Positions 9,141 through 52,515 of a DNA stretch of 64,000 nucleotides are shown in pieces (within the stretch, counting starts at the first letter, position 1; every line of letters begins with the position of its first letter). The stretch spans positions 10,935,187 through 10,999,186 of the forward strand of contig OZ316898.1 in the NCBI GenBank assembly GCA_973895155.1, written 5' to 3'. Position numbers and translations under genes: made by a program. Source of the stretch: Marsupella aquatica. Lineage: Eukaryota; Plantae; Marchantiophyta. The notes under the pieces are model-generated. The model saw only the letters and a program-made list of their open reading frames with translations. It did not search any database and was not told where the DNA came from.

Positions 9141-9540
9141 ACGGCGGAGCTTGCACAGACAATGCCCAGCGTGGGTTTTGTCAGGCGGGACGCAGCGAGA
9201 GAGTTCGTAGCTGCCGTGCATCCAGCCCATAGCACCTGCAACCTCGCGTTTCAAAGAAGGAGCAGAAGATTCAGCTACGGTGAGTCGGTTCAGCCAGCCT
9301 CTCGGATCAACCATTATGTCCTCTCGTCGAAATTCTCCACTTTTGTGACATTCTGCTCTTTTTCGCGTGAACCCGACAGTGCGGAGGAAAATTCGAGCCA
9401 TCGAGGTCGATTTTACTTCATCAAGTTTTACCATTGTTAAGGGAGATGATTGACCCCATGAAGCTGAACAGGTTTTTGGTAGAACGGAACCCTTTTTTTT
9501 TCTGGCCTCGTTGCTGAATGTACTTTGCGATTCAGAACAT
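9141..9540 (+). other. Duplicated copy of exon 1 and the 5' part of intron 1 of the dienelactone hydrolase gene (41336-~41685)
   Basis: AELAQTMPSV...HPAHSTCNLAFQRRSRRFSYG versus MAGLAQTTPSV...HPVHITCNLAFQGRRRRSSCG; same GTGAGT donor (9280 vs 41484); intron similarity continues (gagccatcgag, ctggcctcgttgctg, tgcgattcaga). Confidence 0.85.
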
Positions 9541-9651
9541 AGCCCACTGAGACCTTCTAGGCGAGTCGAGTTATTTGAGAGGGTTGAAGCTGGAGTAATG
9601 TTGCTTCTTGTTGTTCGTGAGCAACTTACTGGTCGAGGTTGTTTGGGTCCA

Positions 9652-11466
9652 ATGGCAGAAGCGGATCAGCAGCGAGGCACTGCTCTGACTGCTGCAGGAG
9701 GGATGAAATTGAAATGGTGGTGCATTGCAGCGGTAGTAGTATGGCTAAGCTTGAGCTCGACAGTCTCAGTACAGGTCGAAGGAGCTCCAATTCTGGGCCC
9801 TGATCTCGCCAGTTGTAAGCCAGTCATCCCGCCGAGGAGAACTGTAGTTGATTCAGTGGATTGCTGCTTCCTTGACACCGGCAAGCCTATCAAGGAATTC
9901 AAATATGATACAAATCTTCCCATGCGAGTTCGCAAAGCTGTGCATAAATTGGATAAAGAGTTCATCAGCAAGTACGAGCGAGCTTACGAGCTAATGCGAG
10001 CTCTCCCAGCACACGATCCTCGCTCCTGGAAAGCCCAGTCCAATCTCCACTGCTCCTATTGCGCAGCCGCGTACTCGCAATTCAATTCGTCAGAAGATTT
10101 GGACGTGCATCATGGCTGGTTTCTCATGCCGTTCCACCGGTGGTACGTCTATTTCCACGAGCGCATCTTGGCCAGTCTCATCGACGACGATACCTTCGCG
10201 ATCCCCTACTGGGCCTGGGACGTGCAGAATGAAACCTTGCCGCCTGCCAACATCATGCCACCCATGTTCACGAACGTGAGCTCTTCCCTGTTCGATCCCT
10301 TCCGCTGCCACATCCATCGGCCTCCGCACATGGTCGACCTCAAGATTCAGGTGGAGCCACACAACAAAGATCCTGAGCAGCTGATTCGTAACAATCACTT
10401 CAACATGTGGAGGGTGATGATCGGCGAGACCAAAACGCCCGAGGCCTTCTTCGGTAAGAAGGTCTCTCTGGGAGACGAGGTCTCGAGCAAATCAGGGCGA
10501 TTTGAGACGGGTCCGCATGGTGCTGTCCACGGATGGACCGGCGACGACACCACCCCATTCGGAGAGGACATGGCGCCCGCGTACACAGCAGCGAAGGACC
10601 CTCTCTTTTTCGCGCACCACTCTCAAGTAGACAGGCTCTGGACGATGTGGAACAACTTGGGAGGGCGCAATTTCGACCACCCTGACTGGCTCGACGCCGA
10701 GTTCCTCTTCTACGATGAGAACGCGGAGATGGTGCGGGTCAAGATCCGGGATTGTTTGGACATCGAAAAGCTCCGGGTCTCGTACGAGCAAGTGCCTGCT
10801 GAATGGCTGGAGTACACTCCGAGATCGCTCCGTCAAACGAATCCCAAGTACCGCCTCCTCCGCAACGAAGGCATCGTGGGACGATTGTGGCGGCAAATGC
10901 TAAATTTGGAAATGGTGAGAAACATGGCTGTGACTATAGAGAGCATTTTCCAGCGACTAGTGAAGGTGAAGCGGACCGATGTCGTCTTGGGAGGAGGAGG
11001 AGGGAGAGCAGCGCTGACCTCGCGAGTCTCTCGGCCGAAGGTGAGCTCACAGAGTGGGATCATGGGGGAGAGCAGCAGCATCAGCAGCGCCAACAATGTG
11101 TCTACTTTGGTGTACGACGAGGTGTTAGTGATCGCAGGAGTCGTGCAAAAGCCTTTCGACGCAATGGTGCTTTTCAACCTCTTTCTGGAGCTTCCGGAAG
11201 CAGACGAGAGCACTCCTCTCGACTGCGCAGAGTCACTAGGCGATGTGTACCTCGAGCCAGAAGGCTTGCGGATGGGAGAAGACACGTCTGTTACGCGGGA
11301 ATTCACCCATACCATTGGCATCGGAGACAGGTTCCAGATTCTAGATTTGAGTCACCATAATTCCGTGTCGGTCACCTTTGTTCCGGCATGGGACCCGAAG
11401 CACGACTCAGACATATCGATAAGATTCAGAGAGCTGAGAATCGAGTTCCAGTTAGCTAGATGGTAA
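9652..11466 (+). CDS. PPO: Polyphenol oxidase (type-3 copper tyrosinase/catechol oxidase) with a predicted secretory signal; start at 9652 or 9703
   Basis: CuA HCSYC...VHHGWFLMPFHRWYVYFHERIL; CuB PHGAVHGW...DPLFFAHHSQVDRLW; DWL domain (PDWLDAEFLFYDEN); diverged C-terminal domain; hydrophobic N-terminus followed by APILGPDLASC. Confidence 0.95.
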   Translation: MAEADQQRGTALTAAGGMKLKWWCIAAVVVWLSLSSTVSVQVEGAPILGPDLASCKPVIPPRRTVVDSVDCCFLDTGKPIKEFKYDTNLPMRVRKAVHKLDKEFISKYERAYELMRALPAHDPRSWKAQSNLHCSYCAAAYSQFNSSEDLDVHHGWFLMPFHRWYVYFHERILASLIDDDTFAIPYWAWDVQNETLPPANIMPPMFTNVSSSLFDPFRCHIHRPPHMVDLKIQVEPHNKDPEQLIRNNHFNMWRVMIGETKTPEAFFGKKVSLGDEVSSKSGRFETGPHGAVHGWTGDDTTPFGEDMAPAYTAAKDPLFFAHHSQVDRLWTMWNNLGGRNFDHPDWLDAEFLFYDENAEMVRVKIRDCLDIEKLRVSYEQVPAEWLEYTPRSLRQTNPKYRLLRNEGIVGRLWRQMLNLEMVRNMAVTIESIFQRLVKVKRTDVVLGGGGGRAALTSRVSRPKVSSQSGIMGESSSISSANNVSTLVYDEVLVIAGVVQKPFDAMVLFNLFLELPEADESTPLDCAESLGDVYLEPEGLRMGEDTSVTREFTHTIGIGDRFQILDLSHHNSVSVTFVPAWDPKHDSDISIRFRELRIEFQLARW

Positions 11467-17537: not shown

Positions 17538-18266
17538 TTAATCTGATCTCATGCCGACTATTATTTTGGAAGCGTCCAAAATTGGGCGTCTATTAAATTG
17601 CTTTACTAGATATCTATCTCCATGCCTCTGAATCACAGGGTCTTCCCATAGAGTATGATTATAATCATAATCTTTAAAAATAGATTTAACTGACCAATCT
17701 GGATAATCTCTTCCATTGGCAATGACAAGCGGCTCACAAGAGTTTGCTAGCTTGCTAAGATACGGAATCAGCAAGTTAATCAGGAAACTGTCGTCGACCG
17801 ACCCAAAATATTTGGGCGGAAATAATGATCCAACAACAGGATCTAAACAAGCATGAAATGCATCGGATTCGATAAGCATTATATTTTGCTGCAGATACGC
17901 CTTCGTATAAATTCCAACCTTCTCAAAATACTTCAAAAATATCCGCTTATTTGATGTCACCCCATCGCATAAGTAACAATGAGACTGATCCCAAATATAC
18001 TTAAATGAGGCCATTTCCATCGCAGTAAAAATAGATGCTAAAATCTGATCTAAAAGGTTCTTCCCAAGAGAGGACCAAATCCCTACATCGAAATTCTCAA
18101 AACAGAATCTCAAGAATTCGTGAAGATGAGGCCTTGGAAAAATGTATATATTCCCAATCCAAATTCCAATTGAGACCGCCATCAATCGGGAATGCGGTGC
18201 AGTGTAACAGAGTAGATGCTCCACGTCTAAAACTATGAGTCCATTTTCTCTGCTGCAATGAATCTC
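17538..18266 (-). CDS. FCP1/SCP/NIF-like HAD phosphatase domain 3 (probably the last exon of the cargo gene)
   Basis: LIVLDVEHLL...PRPHLHEFLRFCFENFDVGIWSS...WDQSHC...FLKYFEKV; acceptor tttctctacag precedes it; the DxDxT motif is degenerate (DVE). Confidence 0.8.
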   Translation of the reverse strand, partial: EIHCSRENGLIVLDVEHLLCYTAPHSRLMAVSIGIWIGNIYIFPRPHLHEFLRFCFENFDVGIWSSLGKNLLDQILASIFTAMEMASFKYIWDQSHCYLCDGVTSNKRIFLKYFEKVGIYTKAYLQQNIMLIESDAFHACLDPVVGSLFPPKYFGSVDDSFLINLLIPYLSKLANSCEPLVIANGRDYPDWSVKSIFKDYDYNHTLWEDPVIQRHGDRYLVKQFNRRPILDASKIIVGMRSD

Positions 18267-18352
18267 CTGTAGAGAAACACAAGAAGATGCATGAGCCCGT
18301 ATGGATGTAGTCACGCAAATGGTCGCGTCACATATTACAGAGAAAACATCCT

Positions 18353-19060
18353 CTACACTCTGGCCATTGATAAGTGACGTCTGTTGAAGTGCTTGATAAG
18401 AACTTGATCCGCATGTCTCTGCACGTACAGATGCTCCCATATATCCTCGTTCAGATCCCAATCTTGATGTAGATTTCTAATCGACCAGATGGGATAATCA
18501 AACTTGTTAGCGAACGCAAGACAAAGCCCTGAATTTGATAGCTTTCGTAAATATGGAATGAGGTCATCCCTCAAAAAGATATCATCCAACGATCCTTGAA
18601 ACGACTTAGCGAACAATAATCCGCATACAGCTGTCTGGCATGTATGGGAAGGACAGGCATCAATCTGGATTATATTCTCTGGTCGATAATCTTGAAACAT
18701 ATCACGTAGTCTCTCGATAGATTTGAAGACAACAGTCTTATAATTTTTCTTCACATAACCAAGATTCCAGCAATGATCCCGCGTGAACACATATATCAGC
18801 TGCGACAGGTCGGTGCTCGACAACACTTCTGAAAGTATCTGATAAACTAGTTTATCGTCGAGAATAGACCAGACCATCACATCAAAATGATCATAACAGA
18901 ATTTTATAAGATCATGAAGATGCGGCCTCGGAACGACACATAGAGATCTGATACGAATTCCGGGTGCCGACTTGAGCTGAGGAGTATATTTTGAAACAGA
19001 GCACAGGAAGTTTTCCAGTCCTAAAACTAGAAGTTGACGCGACCTGCTCCACTTAGACAC
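18353..19060 (-). CDS. FCP1/SCP/NIF-like HAD domain 2 (no catalytic Asp; frameshift at its 3' end)
   Basis: LLVLGLEN...PRPHLHDLIKFCYDHFDVMVWS...VFKSIERL...ENIIQID; acceptor tttatttacag at 19061; clearly paralogous to domain 3. Confidence 0.8.
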   Translation of the reverse strand: MSKWSRSRQLLVLGLENFLCSVSKYTPQLKSAPGIRIRSLCVVPRPHLHDLIKFCYDHFDVMVWSILDDKLVYQILSEVLSSTDLSQLIYVFTRDHCWNLGYVKKNYKTVVFKSIERLRDMFQDYRPENIIQIDACPSHTCQTAVCGLLFAKSFQGSLDDIFLRDDLIPYLRKLSNSGLCLAFANKFDYPIWSIRNLHQDWDLNEDIWEHLYVQRHADQVLIKHFNRRHLSMARV

Positions 19061-19185
19061 CTGTAAATAAACAATTCGATTCTCATATTATGCAATTGCA
19101 AACAACCACGCGACTGGGCGCGTCACTCCCAAAAGTTCAATTTCAATCAATTTATAAATAATAATTGATAATAAACAATAAACGT

Positions 19186-20091
19186 TTACTTATTGGACTT
19201 ATCCCGGGCTTCTATAGCACGGTCTTTTTCGGCAGATAAGTATTTCATAAATTTGTCAAACTTTTCTAAATGGTCTTTATTCCCCTGATTACGAATGATC
19301 ACGTTTCTCCTCCAAAGATTCGTCTTATCAATATAATCTTTCTCAAGATTTTCTTGAGAGAACGTTGGAATCCCATATCCACTAAGGAGCTCGCGGAATG
19401 TCAACTTGTCAATTGACATGTCGCATAGATATGGATATAGTTTCTTTCTAAAAAATAGGTCATCATCGAGCCCAGAATATGCATCGGGATACAACGATGA
19501 ATAGAAGTCATTAAGGCTCGTCTTATATGCAGCGTCATCGATAAGAATGACATTCTCGATGTTGTAATCTTTAATATCGGCGGCAATGTCCGAGAGATAT
19601 TTGACAAATAAAGGGATGTCATTATTATTCTTCCCAATAAGTCGAGTTGATTCTTGTCCCCATATAAATTTAATACGTTTCAAAACTTTGGGTCGAAGTA
19701 TCAGCCTTACACAAGATAGAATATTCCGTTTGAACATGCACGACCAGATCGCAATGTCGTATAGATCTGCCACCTTCTCAAGAAATTCTATTAAATCAAG
19801 CCTTGGATAGATAACCTTGTGCATCTGTCTCACACCCCTTGACCGAATGGGCATCCCAAGGCTGATCTTCTCTGACCAGATAAGTACCCGATTCAGATCA
19901 AAAATTACAAGTCTCTTTTGAACCGGTGACTTCTTTGCCGATGGATTAGGCGCCATCTGTACCTGTGATTTTTGTGCCGCAGGGTTTGGAGAATGTACTA
20001 GAACGGTCTGTTTGTTTCCCGCCTCCGGACGATCACCGGACTTCCGGACTGGTGCCTTCGATACTCGATCAGGGGGTTTCGGGATAGGCTT
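19186..20091 (-). CDS. Exon encoding FCP1/SCP-like HAD domain 1
   Basis: LVIFDLNRVLI...PRLDLIEFL...YDIAIWS...WGQE...FVKYL...NVILIDDAAYK; in-frame acceptor at 20092. Confidence 0.85.
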   Translation of the reverse strand, partial: KPIPKPPDRVSKAPVRKSGDRPEAGNKQTVLVHSPNPAAQKSQVQMAPNPSAKKSPVQKRLVIFDLNRVLIWSEKISLGMPIRSRGVRQMHKVIYPRLDLIEFLEKVADLYDIAIWSCMFKRNILSCVRLILRPKVLKRIKFIWGQESTRLIGKNNNDIPLFVKYLSDIAADIKDYNIENVILIDDAAYKTSLNDFYSSLYPDAYSGLDDDLFFRKKLYPYLCDMSIDKLTFRELLSGYGIPTFSQENLEKDYIDKTNLWRRNVIIRNQGNKDHLEKFDKFMKYLSAEKDRAIEARDKSNK

Positions 20092-23000
20092 CTGTAAAAC
20101 ATTAAGAAATGAAAATAAGTTTATAACGCGAACGGTCGCGTGACTACAAAGAGAGACACTGAAATGAAGTGTATTACCTGTACAAGACGGTCGTTCAGTG
20201 TTGGAATTCCGCCGGAAATGTCAATCATAGCAGCACGGATCCCGGTAACTAGGTTACTTGCGGACATCGACTTGCTGAAGTCCATGTCAAATAACGACAA
20301 GACTATCTCCCTATGGAATTTCTCAATTTGATCCGCGGCAAAATTAATTCCGTTTCCTTGACACAAGCACTTGGCGTATCTCAAGATAAACACACCACAA
20401 TTGTGGCCGTCACTCTGGTGAGGAATATCATTCCGATATATCCGTTCCCAACCTGAGAGATCCAAGTTGACACCACTTCTCCAGCCAATTTCGTCGGCGT
20501 AGTACTTCCCAACAATATCTAGCACCCCAGGATTTTGTCGATTATGAACTAGAGAATCTAGGTACTCCAGCCGTTTCTCCTTCGGATACAAGACTACCAA
20601 TGACCAATGTTCTTTCACAGCATTGTGTACTGGAAAGACCAGTTTCTCGTATTCACTGATTTTTAGCGGAAACTCCTTTGTCCAAGCTGCTCTCTCCTCG
20701 TCAAAAATGGTAGGATCCATGGAGAGAAGCTCAAAATGGTGTGTTTGGAAGAATTTGACAAGGTCTGACTTTCCAACTCTATCGAGAATCAGTTCGAGAA
20801 AACTCAAATAAGCGTTAATTATATCATCGGTGAGCAACTCGCGCGGTCTCAAACACATCATATGTTTCCTCTTGATCGAGTGTTGTAAGAACTTGGTCAA
20901 TAGCTCTTCCATATCCTTAGAAGGATCAAGGCATTGATCTATTCGACTAGCCAAATTTTCAAAAAACTGCAAAAAACAGAGATTTCAGAACGCCTTCAAA
21001 TAACGTACTGAGGTTGTAGCCTAAGGGTTGTAGCCTCAGAAAACAGAAATAATAACAGATCAATAATAAAATAATGACGTCTATAATAGAAACTTTAAGC
21101 TTATAGCTTGCGAATGACCTTTGGATTGGGTGGATCCGGCCTTTTCGCAGCTGATCTCTTGGGTGCCTCAATCGCAACAACATCCTTCAGCCCTCCTCGA
21201 GACCGCAGTGATCGCTCCACCGGACCAGTTTGCGAAGGTTGGAGCGATGAGGCGGGAAGACCTTCAAATGGTTGTGGCATTTGATTCAAATATTCCACAA
21301 TCTGGGAATCCGATTCCAAAATATCCGGTGCCACAATTTCTGCGCGAGTCACCTCTGCAATATATCGGGGTCGAGACCACGAACCCGGTCGCGTCAAGTC
21401 AGCTGTTAGTCTCTTAACGACTTGAGCCGAGTCTGGTGCCAAAAACGTTCCCAGGTCTTGCACTCGATTCTCGGAAAAGCGGACATTATTGATGATTGTC
21501 TCCATTCTGGATGCAGTGGCAGTCTTCTCCTCGGTAATCAAAAGACCCTTCCAATATTGCAAAGCAAGGACTGCCTGGACTCGGAGCTGCTCCGGTGAAT
21601 ATTTATTCCAATCATCCAACGACACCGTACTTAAGGGTGGATCGTTAAATTCAAACTCCGGGCGAAGAAAATAGTCTAATATTTTCTTCTTAACTGCAAC
21701 TGAGGGTGAAGAAGGCTTCTTCAAATTCAGCCTTATTTTCGGTAGACGTTGTGCCTCAGGAATAAGCGAAAGATCCTTGGCCCTCTCGGCCTCCTTCCTC
21801 GCTGCCTCCAGTCTTGCGGCTTCTTCTCTCTCCAGTCTTGCGGAATCCACCTTTTCTGCCTCCAACTTCTTCGCCTCCACCCTCTCCGGTCTTGCGGTCT
21901 CGTCCGCCATCCTCTCGGCCAGAAGCCTCTCAGCCGCCTCACTCTCCGCCTTGGCCCTATTTTCCTCTGTCACTAAAAGGACTCTCGCAGCCTCCGCTTT
22001 CTCAGCCTGGGCTTTCTCCGCCTGGGCTTTCTCAGCCTGGGCTTTCTCCGCATGGGCTTTCTCAGCCTGGGCTTTCTCAGCCTGGGCTTTCTCGGCCTCC
22101 GCTTTCTCAGCCTGGGCTTTCTCGGCCTCCGCTTTCTCAGCCTGGGCTTTCTCGGCCTCCGCTTTCTCAGCCTGGGCTTTCTCGGCCTCCGCTTTCTCAG
22201 CCTGGGCTTTCTCGGCATCCGCTTTCTCCGCCTGGGCTTTCTCGGCCTCCGCTTTCTCAGCCTCGGCTTTCTCCTTCTTCTTCGCGGCAGTTGCTTTTCT
22301 AGCTGCTGCCTTTTTCTTCTTAACCTCCTTCTTTTGAAGCTGCTCTTGCCGGGCCGCCTCTTGTCGGGCCGCCTTCTCCTGCCGGGCCGCCTCCTTCTTT
22401 TGAAGCTCCTCTTGCCGGGCCGCCTCCTGCCGGGCCGCTTCCTTCTTTTGAAGCTCCTCTTGCCGGGCCGCCTCCTGCCGGGCCTCCTCCAGCCTGGCCT
22501 CCTCCTGCCGGGCCGCCTCGTGCTGGGCCGCCTCGTGCCGGGCCGCCTCCTCTCTGGCCTCCTCCTTCCGGGCCGCCTCCTCTTGGTCCACCTCATGTCG
22601 AGGCTCCTGTGTGGCCTCTTCATCAGAGTCCTCAGCGTCCTCAGAACCCTCCATCTCCTCGTCCTCTTCATCAGCGTCCTCAGCGTCCTTCATCTCCTCT
22701 CTGTCACTCTCTTCATCTCCTCTATTGTCGGAATCTCCGACGTCGTTCTGCGTATCGGTCATCCACTCTGGATCTTGGTCATTGACATCCCCATCCATGT
22801 CACCTTCCGCGTCACCTTCCCCCTCACCATCCGCATCACCATTGCTCCCTGCATCCTCAACATTGAAGCCGCAGTCGACTTGATCTGAATAAAATCAGAT
22901 CATTTGATAAGAATGACTCACGCGTGAAAAGAAATGTTATGAATGTCCACGCGCATGTTCGCATGACGCAATAAAAAGTAAGAGGTTTCAAAAGTAACTT

Positions 23001-26000
23001 ACCTTGGATTGGCCCACTAGGGTACTCCGTTGGTCGAATGTACAATCGATCGGAATCTTCAGAGAGTGCATACTCTTGCAATAATTGATTACAAATATTA
23101 TCAGGGATATGTTGTTCGTGGAGGACATCCAAAACATCAGCCCTGAGAGCAGTTACGGATGGACGGTACTTCATTAATTTATCTATACATTTTTCTATAC
23201 TAGCCCGTACTGGGTCAATCAATGACAGCGTTGTATCAATTGTTGCCGTGGTGTGTTGCAAGAAACAAGACAACTCCCTATGCGTTGCCACAGGGCAGTA
23301 ATATTTTACATTGGATCCAGCATCCTGTAAAAAAAGCCGAAATTAGTTCACAATATTAATTGAGAATATAATAATCTACATAATCTTAAAATCAAAACCC
23401 CAAAATATAAATCTCAAAACTTACCATTAAGCACTGGATCAAGTTCGTTCCCTCACCGAAGCATATAGCCCATTCCCCACATTGGACGAATTGACTAACA
23501 ATACTTTCAAAGAATGGAAGTATCTTTTCTGGGGAAGGTGTCGTGAACTCGTCGCTCTCTTCAAAATTGGATATTTTTTCAATCTGATATTTGGAGACCA
23601 ATTGGAACTCAAGGGCTTGTGGATCGCCCATTGTGCTGAAGGCCAAGCTGTGAAAAGCGTAGGTTACAATAAGCTTCTTCTCCTTCGGCCTCTTCTGAAT
23701 ATAATGGCTATCGACAGCAACGTAGTGTGTGTACTTCCCTAATTCCCGTTTGATTAAGTAAGACTCAATGGGAGAGGCTACAATAATAACCACATGGTGT
23801 GGTTTTGCCCCTATCTCGCTAGTAGCACGAAATAACCCCTCATAGAATGAGCAATTTGGCGGACGCAAATCTCCCATTGATGAGGGATCAAAATAAATCA
23901 AGCTCACAAGGTTCTTGTCTTCACGTATGATACAGTCTGCAAACCCAGCATTTTGTATATCCTGCAGGGATCGCAATTTCAGCCTCTCATCGACCGGCCG
24001 CACTAGTTGGTTTCCTTGACTATCAACTGATTTCTGTATTCCTTCCACCAACCTATAGAATATAGGGTCGATCTCCTTCAACAAATTATCATTACTAATA
24101 TTTACATTTAAGCACTTCTTCAGATAACCACTCAACGCATCTCTCAACTGCTTCAGCACCATCTTGTCGAGCTTAAAGCGATCAATCATTCCTTTGACCC
24201 GCAATTTCCGCGCTGAATCTGTCAGACTTTTCAACTCCGTTCGGGTGGATGTTTCCCCGTTGAGTTTACTCAATAATAAAATCTCAAACTCAACTTTTGT
24301 CTTCTTCTTTATACAGAATTGCTCCAAACTCATGTTGGTTGTTGACAACACTGGAGCCTCAAAGGACTTCCTCGCCTTCCCAGATTTCACTTTGATGCTT
24401 CGGTTTTTGAGTATAGACAGTCTTCCGCTCAACATATATTCCGCTGCCTTTCGAAGAACCGAGTCTGAGCACCCTTGACAAGAATGGAACGTCTTCTTCA
24501 GAAGATGATAAGCACACGGATTATCCGCAATTTTGACGGCGTCCCTCTGTAAAATTCCGTTGTAAATTACAAGCTCTCCTGTCCTTGATAGTTCGTAGAC
24601 CTCCATCCACTTCTTGAATGTTTCGTCCTCCATTGTAAAGAGAAACGGAGCCAATTCTCCAAATTTCATCATTTCGTTCTTCCCCATTTGAGCCCATGGG
24701 CAGACAAAACTCGTAGCTCTCATCAATACCTGAAAAACAATGGAAACATGACAATTCTAAGCTTGATGCGACCGTTCGCATGACAAAAGTTTATACGATA
24801 ATGTGATCGAAGAGGGTTATTTATATACCTTCCAATTTGGATGACGATAATATGATCCAGGCTGCCCAAATGAGTTCCAGATATTACGACACTGTCGTAC
24901 AATGGTGAGAAACTGTCCTTCTTCCATTGATGTTTGATGACAATGGTTCAGAGCTTTCGATAATCCCATCAAATGAACATTATTGTCGTTGTTGAGCGTT
25001 GCCCAAAACATTACAGCTTCTATAGTACCGCAAGCGTCTCGTACAACTTGGCTGACTTTGTCGTCCTCTCTCAGCAATTTGTACGCCATTATTGTGTGCT
25101 GGCCTCCGAGTATCCAGAAATGACTGGTCATAATGTCCTCCTCCTTTGGCGATGAATCGTAGGGCGTCCCATTGTAGTCGGGATCTCTGTCGGCCTCCGA
25201 CTGAACCCACTTCATAGGGACTAAAAAGCAGCATCGCTTCTCGAACTTTATAGCCGAATGAGAGAGGAGTGAATTCTTTAGCCTATCTGTGTAATCCTGA
25301 TTCCACTCTCGGCACTTGATGTGGTCCGGTGCAAGATGACAACGTGATGTCTCAACAAAAAATGACTTGCTGTTAAATATATTCACAGCACTATATTCTT
25401 TGAGGAAAGAATCAAACAGAGCCCCGACATTCGCTGAGGTAATTACTTTCGGAAGATTCTCCGCCGAGTATACTTCAACCTTGCTCACTGGCGGGGCCTT
25501 TCCCAAGCGAAATCCCTGGTTGAAAGGAACTCTCTGGAACTCAAGTACGTCAATAATGTATTGACAAATCAAATCTCCCATTGATGCCTCGGGAGGATAT
25601 CCCACACTAGTAACCTTTTCCAAGGCGTGCCTTGCACCTAGAAGATCATCGATTCTGGGCTGATTGAAGGTTACATATTGCGTTCGATCCAAACAAATGC
25701 TTATTTTGTCTTCCTGCTGGTCGTTGCTGACTAGCAGAACCAATCCCTCTGTACACTCTTTAACTTTCATGTTCTTCTCAAAGAAACACCCAAGAATTTT
25801 TGATCTCTCCAAAACTGTAGCTTTATCATTTTTTGCCACCACAAGACGGACAGCCCCATTGCGAACGACTATTCCAAAATCGGATATCTCAGTCGATTCA
25901 AAGAGATGGATACTCTTTGTCTCCGTTGTTCTCTCTCTGATTGACTTTCCTCGATATGCAAGTATGGATGTCTCCGCGGGAGTCATTTTTGTCTTGGCTT

Positions 26001-26061
26001 TCTTTCGAGAAGCAGCTTTAGACGAGTCTCTTTTCCACTTTGAGGTTCCGGTAGGATCCAT
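19186..26061 (-). CDS. Spliced multidomain cargo gene of ~2,106 aa: ParB/Srx-like + degenerate amino-MTase-like + acidic/coiled-coil repeats + Ulp1 protease + FCP1-like domain 1. Exons: 26061-24829, 24729-23425, 23324-23003, 22884-21119, 20966-20178, 20091-19186
   Basis: All five predicted GT-AG introns (99, 100, 118, 152 and 86 nt, AT-rich) join the ORFs in frame; the donor at 21118 (AAG|GTCATT) is weak, so the gene could be split there. Confidence 0.7.
20178..20966 (-). CDS. Exon encoding a Ulp1/SENP (peptidase C48) SUMO-protease domain with an intact triad
   Basis: LTDDIINAYL, PVHNAVKEHWSLVV (His), EYLDSL (Asp), PHQSDGHNCGVF (Gln/Cys). Confidence 0.92.
21985..22582 (-). repeat. Coding minisatellites (AEKAQ/AEKAE)n and (EAARQ)n within cargo exon 4
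   Basis: 15-bp units such as gctttctcagcctgg and ccgggccgcctcctg. Confidence 0.95.
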
Positions 26062-26136
26062 TCTAAAATAGACAAATATTGAAAGTTAAACGTTTATTAT
26101 AAAATACTAACACGCGCATGGTCGCGTCCTGCCGAA

Positions 26137-26667
26137 TTACATTTTAGGAACATTTATCCTGACCCAATCTTCTCGCTCATCTTCATCTAACCAAAACCAA
26201 AGGTTCCTAAACGTGTCAAGTTCAGATCCTTCAAATCCACCCAGAATGTCCAGCGGCGGGAGAGTTCTGATGGATTCTGTAAATCTTAATGCTACACTCC
26301 GTGAAGTCAAATGCCTTCGAAGCGATTCATATCCTGGTCTATCAGTGAAGTCGTAAGCTACCAAGGTGACCGTCGCCTATGTACTACTATAAGTAACTAT
26401 GTGGCACCACTTCTTACTGACTGTTCGAATGGCGATCAAGTCCATGACCCAATTTTTAATCGCAGTATCCGACAAATTCCCAAGACAGTGGAAAAACTCT
26501 TTGACTAATGGCCAAATATATTTCTCGACAATATCGTCCGGAAGACCGGGTATCAGGTCTTCAGCTTGACTCCATATCATGTTTCGGTTCATAACCTTTG
26601 CACGTGCAATGCGCTCCATCATCATTTGACGATGAGATTTTTGATTCATGTCAAAGGACTGCAGCAT
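26137..26667 (-). pseudogene. F-box-only ORF 3 with an in-frame premature TAG at 26377-79
   Basis: DLIPGLPDDIVEKYIWP...IRTVSKKWCHIV; the frame continues after the stop, which aligns with Trp in paralogue 2. Confidence 0.75.
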
Positions 26668-26701
26668 AATATGGAAAAGATTAAGAACAAGAACCTATCC
26701 A

Positions 26702-27268
26702 TTAAGAACTGGGACCACCAAGATTCTGAGAAAATCTACCAAACCTTTCGATTAGGACATCTCGTTCTTCCTCATCTAAATTCTCATATTTGTTCGTAAA
26801 CAATGCGATTTCGTCAGAAGTAGTAGTCCCAAGAACAGATATTTCTGGAAGCATAGAAATATCCTGTCGAATAACTCGACAGACTGAGTCAAACTCCAAC
26901 TCCTCAGTTTCAGGTATGTCGTAAAGAGCATCATTTGCGACATCGACAATCCGGTTTGCTTGTTTGAGGATAGCCCATAACCTTGTATTTGTAACTAGAA
27001 AGTTCCACTTCTTGCTACAAGCTCCAAGCTGAATAAGGTCTCGGACCCTATCGATAACCAAATCGTTATCGAGGTGTCGATATCCACGCAATCTTTCAAT
27101 TGAAATAAAGTGTTCGTAGAGTATTGGCCAAATGTTTGAAATGACCAAAACATCTGGTATTCCTCCAATGAGACTAGAGGAGGTTTCATCCAGCGTATCT
27201 CATATTGTTTTCTGTTTCTTTTCATGAGATGAAAGGAAATCTCGAGCCTCATTCAAAAGTTGGTTCAT
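26702..27268 (-). pseudogene. F-box-only ORF 2 with an in-frame premature TGA near its 5' end
   Basis: MNQLLNEAR...KTI*DTLDETSSSLIGGIPDVLVISNIWP...LGACSKKWNFLV. Confidence 0.7.
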
Positions 27269-27333
27269 CCTGCTTTTATCATATCACAAAACATTGTTAG
27301 AAGATATACGACGCGCTTCGTCACGTAAGTTAA

Positions 27334-27885
27334 CTAGAATTCCTTAAAAGCGTAGATGTCACCCTCAAGGTATCCAACTTCGTGGCATCTGACTGTAAAT
27401 TTCCATTTTTCAAGAGGGTGAAGAGCATCGTAAGTCTTCGTGAAGAGTTCCCTAAGATCTCTGGACATTGACCCCATGAATTTAATTCTTGGGTATTTCT
27501 GGAAGAAACTTTGAACTGTCGATGAGAGAGACTCATTTCCGATCGGTTTAGTAGGATTTCCTGGGAAAGCCAAATCTAATAAACTCAACTTGATTACACC
27601 CAGAAGATAGGTATTCCCAACAAGGTGGCGCCATCTGCGACACACCGAAGATAGTCCTACAAACTCATCCAATTCCTTTATTGAGAAATTTCCTGCATTA
27701 GCCGAGGAATTAAAAGTCTCCTGGATCCGAGGCCATATCAATTCCGCGACAATGAAATCTGGAAGTCCAGGTAGTAGTGTTTCAACAAATACAGAATATC
27801 CCGCAAGTAGACCATCTTGGCTTCTATCCAAAACGTCAAATATTGGGCATAGATATCTGAAGCTCTCCAGACCAGGTTTGCCCAT
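27334..27885 (-). CDS. F-box-only ORF 1 (183 aa, intact)
   Basis: LLPGLPDFIVAELIWP...LSSVCRRWRHLV is a split F-box signature. Confidence 0.8.
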   Translation of the reverse strand: MGKPGLESFRYLCPIFDVLDRSQDGLLAGYSVFVETLLPGLPDFIVAELIWPRIQETFNSSANAGNFSIKELDEFVGLSSVCRRWRHLVGNTYLLGVIKLSLLDLAFPGNPTKPIGNESLSSTVQSFFQKYPRIKFMGSMSRDLRELFTKTYDALHPLEKWKFTVRCHEVGYLEGDIYAFKEF

Positions 27886-28029
27886 GACTCTTTTCAGCCA
27901 AATGATATATCCCAGAGATTATTTTCACGCGACTGGTCGCGTCTACAAATCAGAATGCATAAACAATTCTTTGAGAGACTGATTTTTTCGGGTCACAACG
28001 TGAAATCATAAATGTTGCTTCGTCCTCTA

Positions 28030-29710
28030 ATAGAACCAGTCAATGAGAGAGCAACCTCAGACGCGACTGGTCGCGTCAACTGAACCTAAACAACTATATC
28101 CACTGAACCTTCTGTGGAGATTTGGATATGGTACGCGCTCAGTAAATCTATCCAGTTTCCTTCTCACACGACTGGTCGCGTCAACTGGTCCTAAAAGGAA
28201 CCCTACCTCCTCTAACAGAACCAGTCAATGAGAGATCTACGTCAGACGTGACTAGTCACGTCAACTGGTCCTAAAAGGAACCTTACCTCCTCTAACAGAG
28301 CCAGTCAATGAGAGATCTACGTCAGACGTGACTAGTCACGTCAACTGGTCCTAAAAGGAACCTTAACTCCTCTAACAGAACCAGTCAATGAGAGAGCAAC
28401 CTCAGACGCGACTGGTCGCGTCAACTGAACCTAAACAACTATATCCACTGAACCTTCCTTGTGGAGATTTGGATATGGTACGCGCTCAGTAAATCTATCC
28501 AGTTTCCTTCTCACACGCGACTGGTCGTATCAACTGGTCCTAAAAGGAATCTTACCTCCTCTAACAGAACCAGTCAATGAGAGAGCAACCTCAAACGCGA
28601 CTGGTCGCGTCAACTGAACCTAAACAACTATATCCACTGAACCTTCTGTGGAGATTTGGATATGGTACGCGCTCAGTAAATCTATCCAGTTTCCTTCTCA
28701 CACGCGACTGGTCGCGTCAACTGGTCCTAAAAGGAACCCTACCTCCTCTAACAGAACCAGTCAATGAGAGATCTACCTCAGACGCAGCTGGTCGTGTCAA
28801 CTGAACCTAAACAACTATATCCACTAAACCTTCTGTGGAGATTTGGATATGGTACGCGCTCAGTAAATCTATCCAGTTTCCTTCTCACACGCGACTGGTC
28901 GCGTCAACTGGTCCTAAAAGGAACCTTACCTCCTCTAACAGAACCAGTCAATGAGAGAACAACCTCAGACGCGACTGGTCGCGTCAACTGAACCTAAACA
29001 ACTATATCCACTAAACCTTCCTTGTGGAGATTTGGATATGGTACGCGCTCAGTAAATCTATCCAGTTTCCTTCTCACACGCGACTGGTCGTATCAACTGG
29101 TCCTAAAAGGAACCTTACCTCCTCTAACAGAACCAGTCAATGAGAGAGCAACCTCAAACGCGACTGGTCGCGTCAACTGAACCTAAACAACTATATCCAC
29201 TGAACCTTCTGTGGAGATTTGGATATGGTACGCGCTCAGTAAATCTATCCAGTTTCCTTCTCACACGCGACTGGTCGCGTCAACTGGTCCTAAAAGGAAC
29301 CCTACCTCCTCTAACAGAACCAGTCAATGAGAGATCTACCTCAGACGCAGCTGGTCGCGTCAACTGAACCTAAACAACTATATCCACTAAACCTTCTGTG
29401 GAGATTTGGATATGGTACGCGCTCAGTAAATCTATCCAGTTTCCTTCTCACACGCGACTGGTCGCGTCAACTGGTCCTAAAAGGAACCTTACCTCCTCTA
29501 ACAGAACCAGTCAATGAGAGAACAACCTCAGACGCGACTGGTCGCGTCAACTGAACCTAAACAACTATATCCACTAAACCTTCTGTGGAGATTTGGATAT
29601 GGTACGCGCTCAGTAAATCTATCCAGTTTCCTTCTCACACGCGACTGGTCGCGTTAACTGGTCCTAAAAGGAACCTCACAGTATTTTCACGCGACTGGTC
29701 GCGTCAACAG
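28030..29710. repeat. Tandem array A: 185-189-bp units, two 80-bp subunits and a 563-bp higher-order repeat, with about 20 copies of ACGCGACTGGTCGCGT or close variants
   Basis: The ATG of gtcaatgagag falls at 28043, 28228, 28308, 28388, 28577, 28764, 28951, 29140, 29327 and 29514. Confidence 0.97.
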
Positions 29711-32204: not shown

Positions 32205-33155
32205 TTTTGCTATTGTTTATTGTAGTCGACGGCCTAGCAAAACGAAACGTAATCGAGGTCCATTTTTCAGATCTTCCTGATCTCAACTTGTTAGTAGGAT
32301 GACCTGTTTTTTTGTTACACATGCAGTTCGTCACGCGCACAGTCGCGTGAACCAATGTATCTCGTGTCTTTTGATATTGTTTATTGTAGTCGACAGCCTA
32401 GCAAATTGGCCAGAAATCTATTTTAAAACCAACGTCTTCGTTTCATCACGCGCACGGTCGCGTTAATGTTTTAGAGGTCAACGAAAGTTCTGCACTCTTA
32501 GACGTAATCGCCCTTTATTTCAGAGATCTTCCTGATCTCAACTTGTTAGTAGGATGACCTGTTTTTTGGTTACACATGTAGTTCGTCACAGTCGCGTGAA
32601 CCAATTTATCTCGTGTCTTTTGATAATGTTTATTGTAGTCGAAAGCCTAGAGAATTGGCCAGAAATCTATTTTGAAACCGAGTTCTGATTCACGCGACCG
32701 GTCGCGTTAATGTTTTAGAGGTCAGCGAAAGCTCTGCACTCTTAGACGTAATCGCCCTTTATTTCTCAGATCTTTCTGATCTCAACTTGTTAGTAGGATG
32801 ACCTATTTTTTGGGTTACACATGTAGTTCATCACGCGCACAGTCACGTGAACCAATTTATCTTGATATTGTTTATTGTAGTCGACTGCCCAGCGAATTGG
32901 CCAGAAATATATTTTAAAACTGAGGTCTTTGTTTCATCACGCGCCCGGTCGCGTTAATGTTTTAGAGGTCAGCGAAAGCTCTGCACTCTTAGACGTAATC
33001 GCCCTTTATTTCTCAGATCTGCCTGATCTCAACTTGTTAGTAGGATGATCTGTTTTTGGTTACACATGTAGTTCATCACGCGCACAGTCGCGTGAACCAA
33101 TTTATCTCAGGTCTTTTTGATATTGTTTATTGTAGTCGACAGCCTAGCGAATTGT
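32205..33155. repeat. Tandem array B: about 3.7 copies of a ~245-255-bp unit, each with two ACGCG-N6-CGCGT-type sites
   Basis: gatctcaacttgttagtaggatga at 32279, 32534, 32778 and 33025. Confidence 0.95.
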
Positions 33156-35056: not shown

Positions 35057-38000
35057 GTGATAAGTCTTGATCCTTCCAGGGTTTGTCACAATGTTCCTTT
35101 TGGGGCGGACAGAGGAGTTCTTCTTTTGGAGGAAGTTTTTGACGAGACCATTCTATGCGAAGATGGCGAACTTTTGAAGGACATGATTGGGGGTTACCTT
35201 GTATGGGAAAGGAATCAGCTTTTTCGAGCTCCCATGGAATCGGAGGATGTGTTTGGCACTGTTGGTGATGATCAAGATCCAGTCAATCAAAATTCTGATG
35301 GGAACAACCATAATGAGAGTCGGTCTGGTGTGGAAGTAGTTTTACCAAAGGCCTTGTGGATGGGCATGCCTGTAAAGGTGGTGGATGAGAACAAGTTGAT
35401 ATTTGCAGTGGCAACTATACATGTTCTAGATCCTATAGTCAAGCTTGGGGATGTCACCCTTGGGAATACACATGTGGGAATTCTGATCAACGATTTTGTC
35501 GAGGGAGCTACCATAGATCATCTGAAGCATAGAGATTGCTTAAAAGCTTGGTCGATGGACCAACTCATTGCCAAGGATGGCAACTTGTTGTCTTTCCACA
35601 ACATCAGGCAAGCTGTGGGAGGGAACACATCTCCAACAAGTGGCAAGCGGTCCTACGTCCATAAAAGTAGGAAAAGAAAGAGTCCATCTTCCCAGACATC
35701 TAGAAGAGACACATCTTTGGCACGTCAAGATGTGTTGTTGATAAACACTAAGGACTGTTGTAGTGAACATTGTTGCCAATATTTGGACCGCAACTTGGCT
35801 ATGGCAATTAGGCAAAAGTGGTGGTCAAAATCTTTTGCGGAGCGCAAGGAGGAGGAAATCAAGGCTATTAAAAATACAATACACTTAGGTACTGGAGAAA
35901 GGATTCTAGCAGTGGAGGGCAAAGTATTGTGCTTGGAGGCATGGAGAATCATTCATTCAAGAGGAAAGACTCAATTTTATGCCTTGAAGAAGACTGTGAT
36001 GGCTGGAATGAACATAGGTACCCATGGTAATGCTGGAAAAAAGGCGTATGTCCGAGAAAGTATCTCAAGCGTTCATGTCAATGAAAGAGATTATTGAGGA
36101 GGCAGCTGATCATCATCCAGCCAAGTTGAGAACCATGGTAGATAATACAAGGATGGTTTTGAGGGAATTGCCAACAAATCTTACTTGGGAGAATATTAGA
36201 AACAGGGTTAATGTTGTCAACCAGGAGGCTGGTCTTCCTCCAATTTCCCAACCCACCTTGAGTCATCTACATCAGATGTATTTCAGGGAGTTCTCACGTC
36301 ACAAAAAGGGTAACAACTTTTCAAAGTGTACAACTTGTAGTGAGTTGCTTCAACGGAAAGCAAACCTTACAGGAGCTAAGGAAGAGTTAGAGGGCCTAAG
36401 GCGTGACGAGGAGGAACATCACCAAGACCACACACAACAAAGAATGTGCTATCATACCTGGAGATATGAGTCCATCCATCGTCCAAAGGAAGTGTTATGC
36501 CTTATTCATGATAAGATGGATCATTCAAAGATAGCTCTCCCAAGAATGCCCTTCAATCCTAAGCATGTGGATGGTGCCCAAAAGTTCCCAATTACTGTCA
36601 CTGGTATCCTTACTCATGGTCATGGTCCCAAGGCCATAGCCCAATATCATGTTGGAGTGTGGCCAGGTGATGTCAACATCACTATTGGGTCAATTGATTC
36701 AATACTAAGGATGTTGGAAAACCCAAATCCAATGATCAAATCACTTGTGGAGGGGCCAGACTCGACAAGTCTTTTTAAAGACCTCCTTTTTGGGAGAGCA
36801 GATATCTTGGAGGCAAGTGTCCTTAGAGCATTTGAGGATGACATTGCCTACATCTCAAGCCTAGGTACTTTACTCACAATCCTTTAATTTATTATTATTT
36901 AATAATATAAGCTCACACACACTGACACTCTACTTTGTGTAGTTGTTGCTCCTCCTAGCCAAGGTTTCATTAATAGGGTTTAAACCCTAAACCCTAAATT
37001 GGGGTTTAGGGTCTGACTAGGGTTTTGTTTAAAAGCATTCTGAGATTGTTACATTGTGATGCAGCACCTGAGGCACCAAAGTTCAGGCCCCTTCCACGAG
37101 TATTGAAGCTACAACTGGATAATTGTGCCTCAGACAACAAGAACAGATATATGATGGCTTATTTGTCATTGTTGACGGCAAGGGAGGTGTTTGAAGAGGT
37201 TCATCTTGGTTTTATGGTGGTTGGGCATACTCATGAGGACGTTGACGGTATGTTCGGGCATTTTTCAGAGTCTATGATGCATAACCCCACATACTCATTG
37301 CCTAAGTTAATGTCCTTGTTCATGAGAGCAAGGACACCCAATGCAGTCCCACATTTTCTACAGGAGGTCCCAGATTTCAAAAACTACTTAGCTCCATTCA
37401 TGTTGAAGGGCCCTGAGGCATTGGTGGGGCATTTAAAACCCAGGCTGTTTAGGTTCTATGTTCGTCATGATAGTATGCCATGCTTCCAATACAAAATGAA
37501 GTCAACTGATCAGGGATGGTTACCCAAGGAAGGTATTGAAATGTGGTCATGGAAAGATGACAAAAGTCCTCACATCCCAATTGGGGTGCCCAAACGGCTA
37601 CCAATGATGGAGTTGAAAATGCTTCCTGAAGTGCTGACAGGGTTGAAGAAGCATGTGTCATTCTTTGAGTTTATTCTAAAGCGAACAAAAGAGGAAGAAC
37701 CAAAGCGACGTTGGACAACTCTCATCAATTATTGGAATGGCATTGTAGATACTCTACAGGGTGAGCAGGTGCAATATGAACCTGAAGGTGCACACAACTT
37801 GGAATACGGGTTTTGGCCTTTATCAATATGGAGAGAGCACGTTCCACCAGAATATCGAAATGTGGTATGTGAGTTGGAGGCAACAGTGGATTATGTGGGA
37901 CCAGCAAAAGATAAACCTCCTGAGAGTTTTAACCCTAGGGTTGATGTTGTGAAGGGCTGTTATGTGTTGGTACGGCCGGACGACTCAGACCTGGATGTTT

Positions 38001-38353
38001 ATCCCGTCCATATGGGGTTAGTTGTTACAGATGTGGTAGAAGGACCAGTGAATGAACAAAACCTTCTTACTCATGTATGTGGCGTTGAGTGGTTTAGACC
38101 ATTTATGGCAAAGAAGCAACGTGGTCAATCAGACTGGCAGCCAAGAGAGCGGTGGGCAGATTCTTGGGATAAGAAATGGGAACGTGATCCATCTCCAATA
38201 TACAAGGAAGCTGAGACAATAGATGTTTCCTCTGCCTTGTGGTGTTTCAAAGCACGCAAAGGACCAATGACAGGGCTGGTAGGAATTCCAAAGAATGTTG
38301 CTGTCAAGGCAAGAGACTATCTCTTGACATGCATAGCAAGTGACAAATCCTAG
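35057..38353 (+). CDS. Sola-like (DUF7869-type) DDD transposase with one frameshift in an A-run (~36037-42) and an intron at 36865-37064; the true start is probably further upstream
   Basis: DCCSEHCC, THGNAG, FSKCTTC, LIHDKMD, LQLDNCASDNKN and FMVVGHTHEDVDGMFG; the phase-1 intron joins the ORFs in frame; two N-terminal TnpA/DUF8039-like repeats. Confidence 0.88.
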
Positions 38354-51649: not shown

Positions 51650-52515
51650 ATGGCTGGAACCAATGCTCGGGGGAAAAATTTTGCTAATGCAGAGTTGAAG
51701 CAAGTGTGCATGTCCTGGGTGAACATTTCCGAGGACCCCATTGTAGGCGCAGGGCAGAAAATGCAACATTTTGGGATTGTGTTGCTGCTCACTACAACCA
51801 TCACCGACCGAAGGGGACTCAAGAGAGGGGAGCGAGATCATTGGAAAGCAAGTGGCAGGACTTGAAACGTGATGTTGCAAATTTTTTGGGTGTATATAGT
51901 GCAGTAGAGGACCTGAGGTTGTCGGGAGCAAATCAGGAGGACACTCTACAGAAAGCTCTGGAATTATATCAACAAAAGAATGCAAAGGGGAAGGAATTTG
52001 CCTTCATAGACTGCTGGTACATGCTCAAAGACTGCCCTCGATTTTCGCAGACAGTGGAGGACATGGCATCCAAGGGGAAGGGCAAATCTCAGAGCAAGGG
52101 GAAGAGTGGGCTGCCAGACAAATCAAATGTGCCTCCAACACCACATTCACCAACAAAAATCATTAACCAGCATGGTGGAGGTCTCTCAATAGTAGATGGA
52201 GTGGAATTCAGCTCAAATTCACAGCAGAGGCCGATTGGCAACAAGTCTGCCAAGAGGCTTAAGTCTGAGGAGTGCTCTTTTTGCATTGCAGCTTATGCTC
52301 AACGGGATATGGCAGCCGCCAATGCCAAACGAATGAAGATATTGGAGGATCAGAGCCTACACAACCTGTTTAGTATGAGAGCTGCAGATGTAGACGACGA
52401 ATGCAAGGAATTCTTTCGAGCTTGTAGAGCCCAAGAGCTTACCAAATTCGCACAGAGAATTGAACAGGAAGAGGCTGAGGCTGCTAGAGCTAGTACTAGA
52501 CGCTTGGGGGGTTAA
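51650..52515 (+). pseudogene. Harbinger ORF1 (Myb/SANT-like, NAM-associated) with a frameshift near 51760
   Basis: RGKNF...SWVNISEDPIVGAGQK / ATFW...RSLESKW...FAFIDCWYMLKDCPRF...RPIGNKSAK. Confidence 0.88.

Follow-up and report, generated by a model that had tools for sequence, protein, structure and literature searches.

The window, a 64,000-nucleotide stretch of DNA from the liverwort Marsupella aquatica, raises the question of what a protein resembling both prokaryotic ParB and DNA methyltransferases is doing on a plant transposon, and how far either resemblance holds. The sequence strings quoted in a preliminary description of the window were all found on the minus strand where that description had put them. 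On this strand, ORFs and splice signals define an intact four-exon gene spliced by GT..AG introns. Exon 1 (E1; 24829..26061) is read in phase 0 from an ATG at 26061 to a donor GT at 24828 and encodes 411 aa. Exon 2 (E2; 23425..24729) encodes 435 aa, of which the N-terminal two-thirds are helical and the C-terminal third is the methyltransferase candidate, while exon 3 (E3; 23003..23324) comprises 107 codons plus 1 nt. Exon 4 (E4; 21101..22884) encodes an acidic, KAEAE-repeat (coiled-coil-like) linker toward the Ulp1 and FCP1-like ORFs described below; it contains tandem 15/30-nt repeats and gave low-complexity matches only against Pfam. Intron 1 (24730..24828; GT..AG) has a degenerate palindrome inside, intron 2 (23325..23424; GTAAGT..CAG) interrupts the candidate domain right behind its motif-I-like element, and intron 3 (22885-23002) keeps E4 in frame with E3.

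Homologues in other samples continue the ORF past the end of E1 as 'WK|VS', and a 'VS' read-through is found at the same intron 2 position at the end of E2 in P0001, P0002, L001, L027, and L034. Because the read-through into 'V S...' occurs exactly at the E1 and E2 ends in every homologue, both donor sites are conserved. The gene is spliced, and its intron positions are kept in relatives down to <20% identity. A low-depth joint from 23317 to 23437 was discarded, as it disagrees with the GT..AG borders.

E1 encodes a PH/PTB-like beta-sandwich domain (25501..25956, minus strand; E1 residues 36-187) followed by a ParB/Srx-fold domain (24928..25377, minus strand; E1 residues 229-378). The E1 structure model (pLDDT 82.7) contains the alpha/beta fold of the ParB N-terminal domain, and the top 13 Foldseek matches were all ParB/Srx proteins. 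The best structural matches were ParB, Noc, and KorB of the DNA segregation type; Srx and SerK were also retrieved, with Srx giving the highest identity (16-18%). Matches in BFVD were ParB-like proteins, one of them a phage DNA methylase. At the sequence level, neither E1 nor seven relatives matched Pfam ParB_N (PF02195) or its clan models at E<=1, and an E1 profile retrieved nothing from PDB sequences. Searches of Pfam, NCBIfam, PHROGs, and PDB sequences with E1, E2, E3, and relatives likewise returned nothing relevant, neither ParB_N nor N6_N4_Mtase.

The defining feature of the domain is a GGQHT motif (25093..25107, minus strand), the counterpart of GERRxRA in ParB, GGCHR in Srx, and DGQHR in DndB/DUF6551. 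It sits at a strand-to-helix turn in the model, and its G, Q, and H do not vary across our alignment (A7). The E1 homologues comprise 30 cluster representatives, and FWI[IVL][GD]GQH[TS] and LSxxLN are kept in these far beyond chance. The family consensus is [GD]GQH[TS][IV]xA and LSxxLN, without a conserved Arg. The domain missed by Pfam has a ParB/Srx fold, apparently of DUF6551 type, with GGQHT standing in for the nucleotide-binding arginine box. The preliminary description had proposed a ParB/Srx-type domain with Thr in place of Arg, to be checked by structure prediction; the fold was recovered, and together with the family-wide motif it bears this proposal out. The CTP-binding clamps ParB, Noc, KorB, and PadC carry GERRxRA and ENLQR boxes, whereas the window family has GGQHT and LSxxLN instead. 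With both boxes replaced, CTP binding and hydrolysis by the window protein are doubtful, and without an Arg box the protein is unlikely to form a canonical CTP-dependent sliding clamp. No ParB helix-turn-helix (HTH) domain was recognizable downstream of the window protein's ParB domain.

The suggested prokaryotic or phage affinity of the ParB part is supported through DUF6551 (PF20188). DUF6551 proteins appear to share the same ParB/Srx-type core, and a near-identical FWIxDGQH[RT] box is common to the window family and to phage DUF6551 members. The phage sequences read DGQHT or DGQHR, so that several of them also have Thr for Arg. One phage ORF (in L018) matches PF20188 at 1.4e-38 and carries FWIIDGQHT. 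By hhalign, the family aligned to a bona fide DUF6551 member over 86 columns (86.8%, E 4e-6) and to a seven-member DUF6551 alignment over 45 columns (88.5%, E 2.7e-6), with the C-terminal helical part of DUF6551 left unaligned. Against the PF20188 gathering threshold of 26.8 bits, the window protein had no match, and the relatives P0024 and L027 scored 13.5 and 11.3 bits. The window protein also differs from the phage and bacterial DUF6551 proteins in having an extra PH-like domain at the N terminus and long extensions at the C terminus; it is spliced, is carried on a eukaryotic transposon, and falls below the Pfam threshold. DUF6551 phage records are annotated either as 'ParB-like partition protein' or as 'ParB-like nuclease domain protein.' The ParB box had no relative in a scan of bacterial and archaeal genomes, tblastn of phages with the window protein's ParB part gave no match, and no annotated full-length relative was present among 1.84 billion cluster representatives.

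The second resemblance, to a beta-class DNA methyltransferase, fared differently. The C-terminal third of E2 and the start of E3 appear to form a separate conserved alpha/beta domain, whose E2 portion covers residues 260-435 (23425..23952, minus strand). Homologues of E2 were found in P0001-P0003, L001, L017, L027, and L034; a word-index search retrieved only three, an alignment query none beyond these, and the C-terminal piece alone none, and a metagenome scan with the E2 alignment found no homologue. The contigs of P0001, P0002, P0004, P0007, P0024, and P0026 contributed nothing more, being too short or lacking DNA sequence. E3 shares 43% identity with its L001 counterpart and showed neither a family match nor a motif II signal. 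E2 was folded on its own, and E2 and E3 were searched as separate sequences; the candidate domain straddles intron 2. The resulting E2 model is confident for residues ~70-240 only and unusable for residues 243-435, with a pLDDT of 30-45 in the candidate domain. Since the C-terminal half has a pLDDT of <50, Foldseek and VIA-align output for it is noise. Helices in this low-confidence model coincide with the expected places of alphaD, alphaE, alphaZ, and alphaA, and the ESM Atlas held no usable match for whole E2 or for residues 255-435.

No methyltransferase signal was found in the candidate domain with Pfam, NCBIfam, or PHROGs. Twelve genuine PF01555 enzymes served as the reference set for hhalign and position-specific scoring matrix (PSSM) tests; hhalign of E2 and E3 against them returned 0.1-0.25%, and a custom PF01555-type HMM run with --max failed to single out E2 from the 468 ORFs of the window. 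The string 'VSLIYFDPSS' (23878..23907, minus strand), which the preliminary description had read as resembling catalytic motif IV, is indeed the window protein's best motif IV PSSM match, with a score of 8.0 versus 18-21 in real enzymes (shuffle p=0.08). Its DPSS is replaced by DCSV or DSTL in close relatives and is absent in the distant L027 and L034, and no family member contains a (D/N/S)PP(Y/F/W) motif. Block tests for motifs IV, X, and II were at chance level, with motif X undetected, and for motifs X-I and I the window protein matches best at places other than those proposed earlier. The beta-class fold, for which all sequence tests were negative and the sole structure model is of very low confidence, is not supported by these data, and the motif resemblance does not rise above chance. 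The check by structure prediction set out in the preliminary description came out in favour of the ParB fold and decided neither way on the methyltransferase.

One element of the domain is conserved. 'GEWAICFGEGT' (23446..23478, minus strand) is motif-I-like and follows the family pattern G[DE]x7G[ST], which is kept in relatives <20% identical and in which G427 is invariant in our second alignment (A9). The top motif I PSSM match falls at the homologous column in 3/6 members (L027, L034, and P0002; p=0.09-0.2 each), and the family-mean motif I score at this column ranks 2 of 421 windows. The Asp/Phe/Gly-x-Gly residues of motif I are not conserved in the family, and as a sequence-level hint of methyltransferase ancestry we consider the pattern suggestive only.

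We regard it as about evenly balanced whether the alpha/beta domain formed by the E2 C terminus and the E3 start represents what is left of a beta-class DNA amino-methyltransferase. Quite plausibly, E2 residues 260-435 and the E3 start instead form an unrelated or novel alpha/beta domain, with both motif resemblances due to chance. All profile and block tests at chance, the unconserved DPSS, and the lack of fold evidence agree with such a domain, as does the occurrence of the beta-alpha-beta pattern in many folds. Against it, G[DE]x7G[ST] follows an amphipathic helix, persists to <20% identity, and ranks first among the motif I matches of three divergent members; the strand/helix order and ~140-residue spacing fit minimal beta-class enzymes (such as the 216-aa phage enzyme in L007); and ParB-methyltransferase is a published architecture among algal transposon accessory genes (PMC12477816). 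Negative sequence tests carry little weight in this protein, given that sequence methods also missed the ParB domain, which its fold reveals clearly.

Phage and plasmid ParB-N6_N4 methylase fusions and ParB-terminase loci (PMC4738411, PMC5512222) have the same order as the window protein, with ParB followed by the (candidate) beta-class methyltransferase. In contrast, genuine fusions match PF01555 at ~1e-50 where the window protein scores nothing, and ~260 helical residues separate its two parts. A methyltransferase remnant, if real, would be catalytically dead because no member has (D/N/S)PP(Y/F/W); the earlier suggestion of a dead enzyme thus stands only if such a remnant exists, and the methyltransferase identity on which it depends is itself unsupported. 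The other option offered at that time, a strongly diverged enzyme that is still active, is very unlikely, also in the form of an N4C/N6A DNA methyltransferase marking the palindromes: all that speaks for it is the order of the motifs as first proposed and the existence of 4mC enzymes of bacterial origin in eukaryotes, whereas no member has the (D/N/S)PP(Y/F/W) motif, the motif I residues are unconserved, and there is no PF01555 signal. It is too early to attach the label 'methyltransferase' to this gene family on motif resemblance alone.

What the gene does may be better judged from its surroundings. A downstream cassette on the minus strand contains a Ulp1 protease ORF (20121-20972; Pfam PF02902 at 6.7e-18) and three NIF/FCP1-like units (17538-19956; PF03031 at 1e-14, 4e-11, and 4e-9). 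The strand opposite the ParB-like gene carries DUF7869 ORFs, and a putative transposase ORF (37025-38353) had no PDB sequence match. A private palindrome, ACGCGACnnGTCGCGT, occurs in 30 copies between 18313 and 34848 (no strand assigned; <=2 mismatches), compared with 0.01 expected. It forms arrays at 27927-29704 and 32333-33093, both confirmed by TRF, and stands as single copies between the cassette ORFs and at 26112, upstream of E1. Four runs from two studies point to high copy number, with very high depth and diverged contigs in the hundreds. The earlier placement of the gene on a transposon that bears palindromes is borne out by these counts, and this mobile element occurs in high copy number.

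Relatives lack this palindrome, and each lineage has one of its own. L027 contains 13 copies of TGGGTCGatCGACCCA, and L033 and L034 contain 9-11 copies of ACGAACGnnCGTTCGT. Each palindrome has an architecture of 7-8+2+7-8 nt, is lineage specific, and also occurs in arrays. Positions are equivalent across lineages (upstream of the gene, within intron 1, and within intron 2), and no palindrome is common to the lineages; intron 1 of L027 and of L034 holds two copies of its own palindrome in each case.

We consider it unlikely, on these data, that the locus is a dead transposon relic whose ORFs have no present function. Such a relic would agree with the finding that no RNA run contains the stretch, the four matching runs being DNA contigs that span the introns. 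Conversely, the four exons and the Ulp1 and FCP1-like ORFs are all open in this copy, and the introns are conserved even in distant lineages. Compared with copies in public runs, the gene shows 17 synonymous and 16 non-synonymous differences, a synonymous excess over the 9.2 expected (p=0.003).

The palindromes also bear on whether the ParB/Srx-fold domain is instead enzymatic (a nuclease or NTP-dependent kinase-like enzyme, as in some ParB-like nucleases, SerK, or Srx), with the palindromes read by another part or another protein, for example the transposase. This is unlikely. The structural matches include Srx and SerK, the Srx GGCHR box is similar to GGQHT, and phage DUF6551 is annotated 'ParB-like nuclease'; moreover, canonical ParB reads parS with its HTH domain and not its N-domain. 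Nevertheless, the best structural matches are the segregation-type ParB, Noc, and KorB, and the palindrome varies along with the protein lineage. The window domain also lacks the catalytic Cys and Arg of sulfiredoxin (Srx), from which it further differs by sitting within a large multidomain transposon protein.

Transposon ParB-methylase genes are already known from algae, as published in 2025. Sola1-1_Ec32 of Ectocarpus has a transposon accessory protein with ParB and a DNA methyltransferase (PMC12477816), and Plavaka PAG3 of Bostrychia combines ParB with a 2OG oxygenase, with inverted-repeat arrays adjacent (10.1101/2025.02.11.637652). The authors propose that these accessory proteins bind and modify the element's own DNA (PMC12477816; 10.1101/2025.02.11.637652). 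By their published description, the algal genes are likewise transposon borne, on the strand opposite to a putative transposase, and accompanied by inverted-repeat arrays. The window gene, in contrast, comes from a land-plant lineage, its effector half contains no recognizable methyltransferase, and it has an extra PH-like domain and linked Ulp1 and FCP1-like modules.

Genomic context favours a transposon self-recognition module. The locus is probably an accessory gene, in an apparently intact copy, of a high-copy plant DNA transposon that recognizes itself via private palindromes. The ParB-like protein would recognize the palindromes of its own element, as ParB does parS, and would deliver the Ulp1 SUMO-protease and FCP1-like modules, whether fused to it or encoded downstream, to the DNA of that element. 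The methyltransferase remnant, if it is one, would serve as a DNA-binding or scaffolding module rather than as an enzyme. Co-occurrence is what points to palindrome binding by this protein, and the palindromes might instead be read by another protein or by the helical part of E2. More tentatively, the system may be a land-plant ParB-parS analogue, with a DUF6551-type protein nucleating on the DNA of the element, a coevolving palindrome, SUMO-protease/CTD-phosphatase-like delivery, and a pseudo-methylase clamp or reader, which would control the element's own chromatin or transcription.

We know of no experimental demonstration of such a self-recognition mechanism for any eukaryotic transposon. 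If the palindromes are read by the protein, bryophyte and algal transposons would carry a ParB-parS-like addressing system that acts on their own copies only. Such addressing, if true, would bear on the ways in which giant DNA transposons evade host silencing or turn it to their use, and could supply programmable pairs of protein and site.

The gene lies on the minus strand, where long ORFs are connected via canonical GT..AG introns. The first exon, E1 (26061-24829; 411 codons, phase 0), is followed by E2 (24729-23425; 435 codons), E3 (23324-23003), and E4, which runs from 22884 to a stop at 21101; past E4, the minus strand also carries one Ulp1 protease ORF as well as three NIF/FCP1-like ORFs, and these ORFs together with the gene are referred to here as the cassette. 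All strings quoted in the preliminary description are present in this gene. In all homologues from other samples, prokaryote-style ORF calls at the ends of E1 and E2 continue into "V S..." (i.e., GTnAGn), after the WK or WE that closes E1 and after the last residue of E2. The same read-through points across relatives thus support the exon borders. One low-depth contig in run X4 lacks 119 nt around intron 2 (23317-23437), not matching the GT..AG borders; this contig is probably a deleted DNA copy rather than a transcript. Within E4 (21988-22581, minus strand), tandem repeats with units of 15/30 nt and 48 nt give rise to helical repeats of the KAEAE and AARQEE types, and the region looks like a fast-evolving coiled-coil linker. 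Among the ORFs upstream of E1 (26063-27885, minus strand), the one at 27334-27885 returned no Pfam match at an E value of ≤0.01.

Exons were searched singly, each on its own sequence rather than as a spliced product. E1 gave no match in sequence libraries. HMMER, run in full against 1.84 billion cluster representatives, retrieved 30 relatives, all of them short ORFs in unannotated assemblies, with the motifs FWI[IVL][GD]GQH[TS][IV]xA and LSxxLN in common. The AlphaFold model built on this 30-relative alignment was confident (mean pLDDT, 82.7), and its top 13 Foldseek matches in the PDB were all ParB, Noc, PadC, or sulfiredoxin; a viral structure library again returned ParB-like proteins. The ParB/Srx domain proposed from the sequence is therefore borne out, with the coordinates originally assigned (24950-25330) falling inside the domain (24928-25377) and the GxH box with threonine in place of arginine correctly read (GGQHT, 25093-25107). 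The sequence lacks the arginine boxes to which ParB owes its function as a CTPase clamp, and canonical CTP switching is therefore not expected.

Scanning viral contigs with the conserved box retrieved a phage ORF (contig L018) that carries FWIIDGQHT and clearly belongs to Pfam DUF6551 (1.4e-38). With hhalign, the plant family scored 86.8% against this ORF and 88.5% (E value of about 3e-6) against seven aligned phage DUF6551 proteins. Threonine instead of arginine also occurs in several phage members, which phage records label as ParB-like partition or nuclease proteins. This similarity supports a prokaryotic derivation of the ParB half. The window protein does not reach the Pfam threshold, and full DUF6551 membership is thus not established. 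Directly upstream of the phage DUF6551 gene (L018, 1390-4810) are two further ORFs, one ParB_N-like and the other for an SNF2-type helicase, such that two different ParB-like genes stand in tandem.

Exons 2 and 3 had been described as containing a degenerate beta-class N4/N6 DNA-methyltransferase fold. Neither profile tests nor motifs IV, X-I, and II support this assignment. In ungapped block tests, the proposed motif IV string is the best such match in the window protein, but it scores 8.0, compared with 18 to 21 for authentic enzymes (P = 0.08), and PSS is not retained, relatives having DCSV or DSTL; neither the motif X-I block nor the motif II block rose above chance. No member has (D/N/S)PP(Y/F/W). 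Because this catalytic motif is missing throughout, the alternative that the protein is a divergent but active methyltransferase is very unlikely. A metagenome scan yielded two far more distant lineages (L027 and L033/L034) with complete E1 and E2 ORFs, their E2 being <20% identical to that of the window. The motif-I-like region reads GDCIFNVFGGSK and GETVYNVCGGSK in these lineages. For L027, L034, and one further homologue (P0002), this column is precisely where motif I matches best over the full protein (P = 0.09 to 0.2 per sequence), and the family-mean score here ranks second of 421 windows; the conserved column hints at a methyltransferase, albeit not significantly.

Only three E2 homologues were found in the initial search. 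The E2 model from a five-sequence alignment had a pLDDT of 30 to 45 across residues 243 to 435, and its fold-search output is thus noise. Against 12 genuine PF01555 enzymes (Escherichia coli YhdJ and 11 phage enzymes), hhalign gave the E2 family 0.1 to 0.2% probability with nothing aligned in the expected register, and still 0.1% once the distant lineages were added. With every filter disabled, a PF01555-type HMM did not single out E2 among 468 window ORFs. Because the ParB domain escapes sequence methods just as fully, these negatives count only weakly against a methyltransferase fold, and we consider the case for a methyltransferase remnant roughly evenly balanced.

The palindrome ACGCGACnnGTCGCGT occurs 30 times in the window (0.01 expected). 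Two arrays of it separate the cassette from opposite-strand DUF7869 ORFs, and further copies lie just upstream of E1 and between neighboring downstream ORFs. Relatives in the distant lineages carry palindromes of similar build and different sequence, none common to two lineages: TGGGTCGatCGACCCA in L027 (13 copies) and ACGAACGnnCGTTCGT in L033 and L034 (9 to 11 copies). In both lineages, these lie upstream of E1 and within introns 1 and 2 of the ParB-like gene, two per intron (3506, 3579, 5043, and 5076 in L027; 1657, 1712, 3109, and 3183 in L034). For the window copy, the intronic versions are all degenerate and are confined to introns 1 and 3.

Hundreds of diverged fragments at very high depth in four public runs from two studies indicate that the unit is a high-copy repeat. 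The best-supported differences comprise 17 synonymous and 16 other changes, with 9.2 synonymous expected (P = 0.003). Facing the cassette across the palindrome arrays are three DUF7869 ORFs (35057-38353, plus strand; Pfam, 1e-36), presumably the transposase; they had no PDB sequence match, and no mention of DUF7869 was found in the literature. An ordinary host gene, encoding an intact polyphenol oxidase with Tyrosinase, PPO1_DWL, and PPO1_KFDV domains (9511-11466, plus strand), lies about 6 kb past the cassette 3' end. An ORF at 51706-52515 (plus strand) matches a NAM-associated C-terminal domain and DUF6818, typical of another plant transposon-associated gene.

ParB-type accessory genes of algal transposons have been published (PMC12477816; 10.1101/2025.02.11.637652). 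Ectocarpus Sola1-1_Ec32 bears a 1,104-aa ParB and DNA-methyltransferase protein, and the authors of that study proposed that proteins of this kind bind their own element and modify it (PMC12477816). PAG3 of Bostrychia Plavaka combines ParB with a 2OG oxygenase and adjoins inverted-repeat arrays (10.1101/2025.02.11.637652), and phage ParB-terminase loci are a known source of eukaryotic methylases (PMC4738411). Our literature search found no liverwort paper. Taken together, the observations in the preliminary description are partly confirmed and their interpretation is partly supported. New from the window are an apparently intact copy of the cassette, the DUF6551 link of the ParB part, the PH-like N-terminal domain, and the finding that protein and palindrome change together in three lineages. 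The simplest reading is self-recognition, in which a ParB-like accessory protein of the transposon would recognize its own element via private palindromes, by analogy with ParB and parS, and would either bear Ulp1 and FCP1-like activities itself or recruit them.
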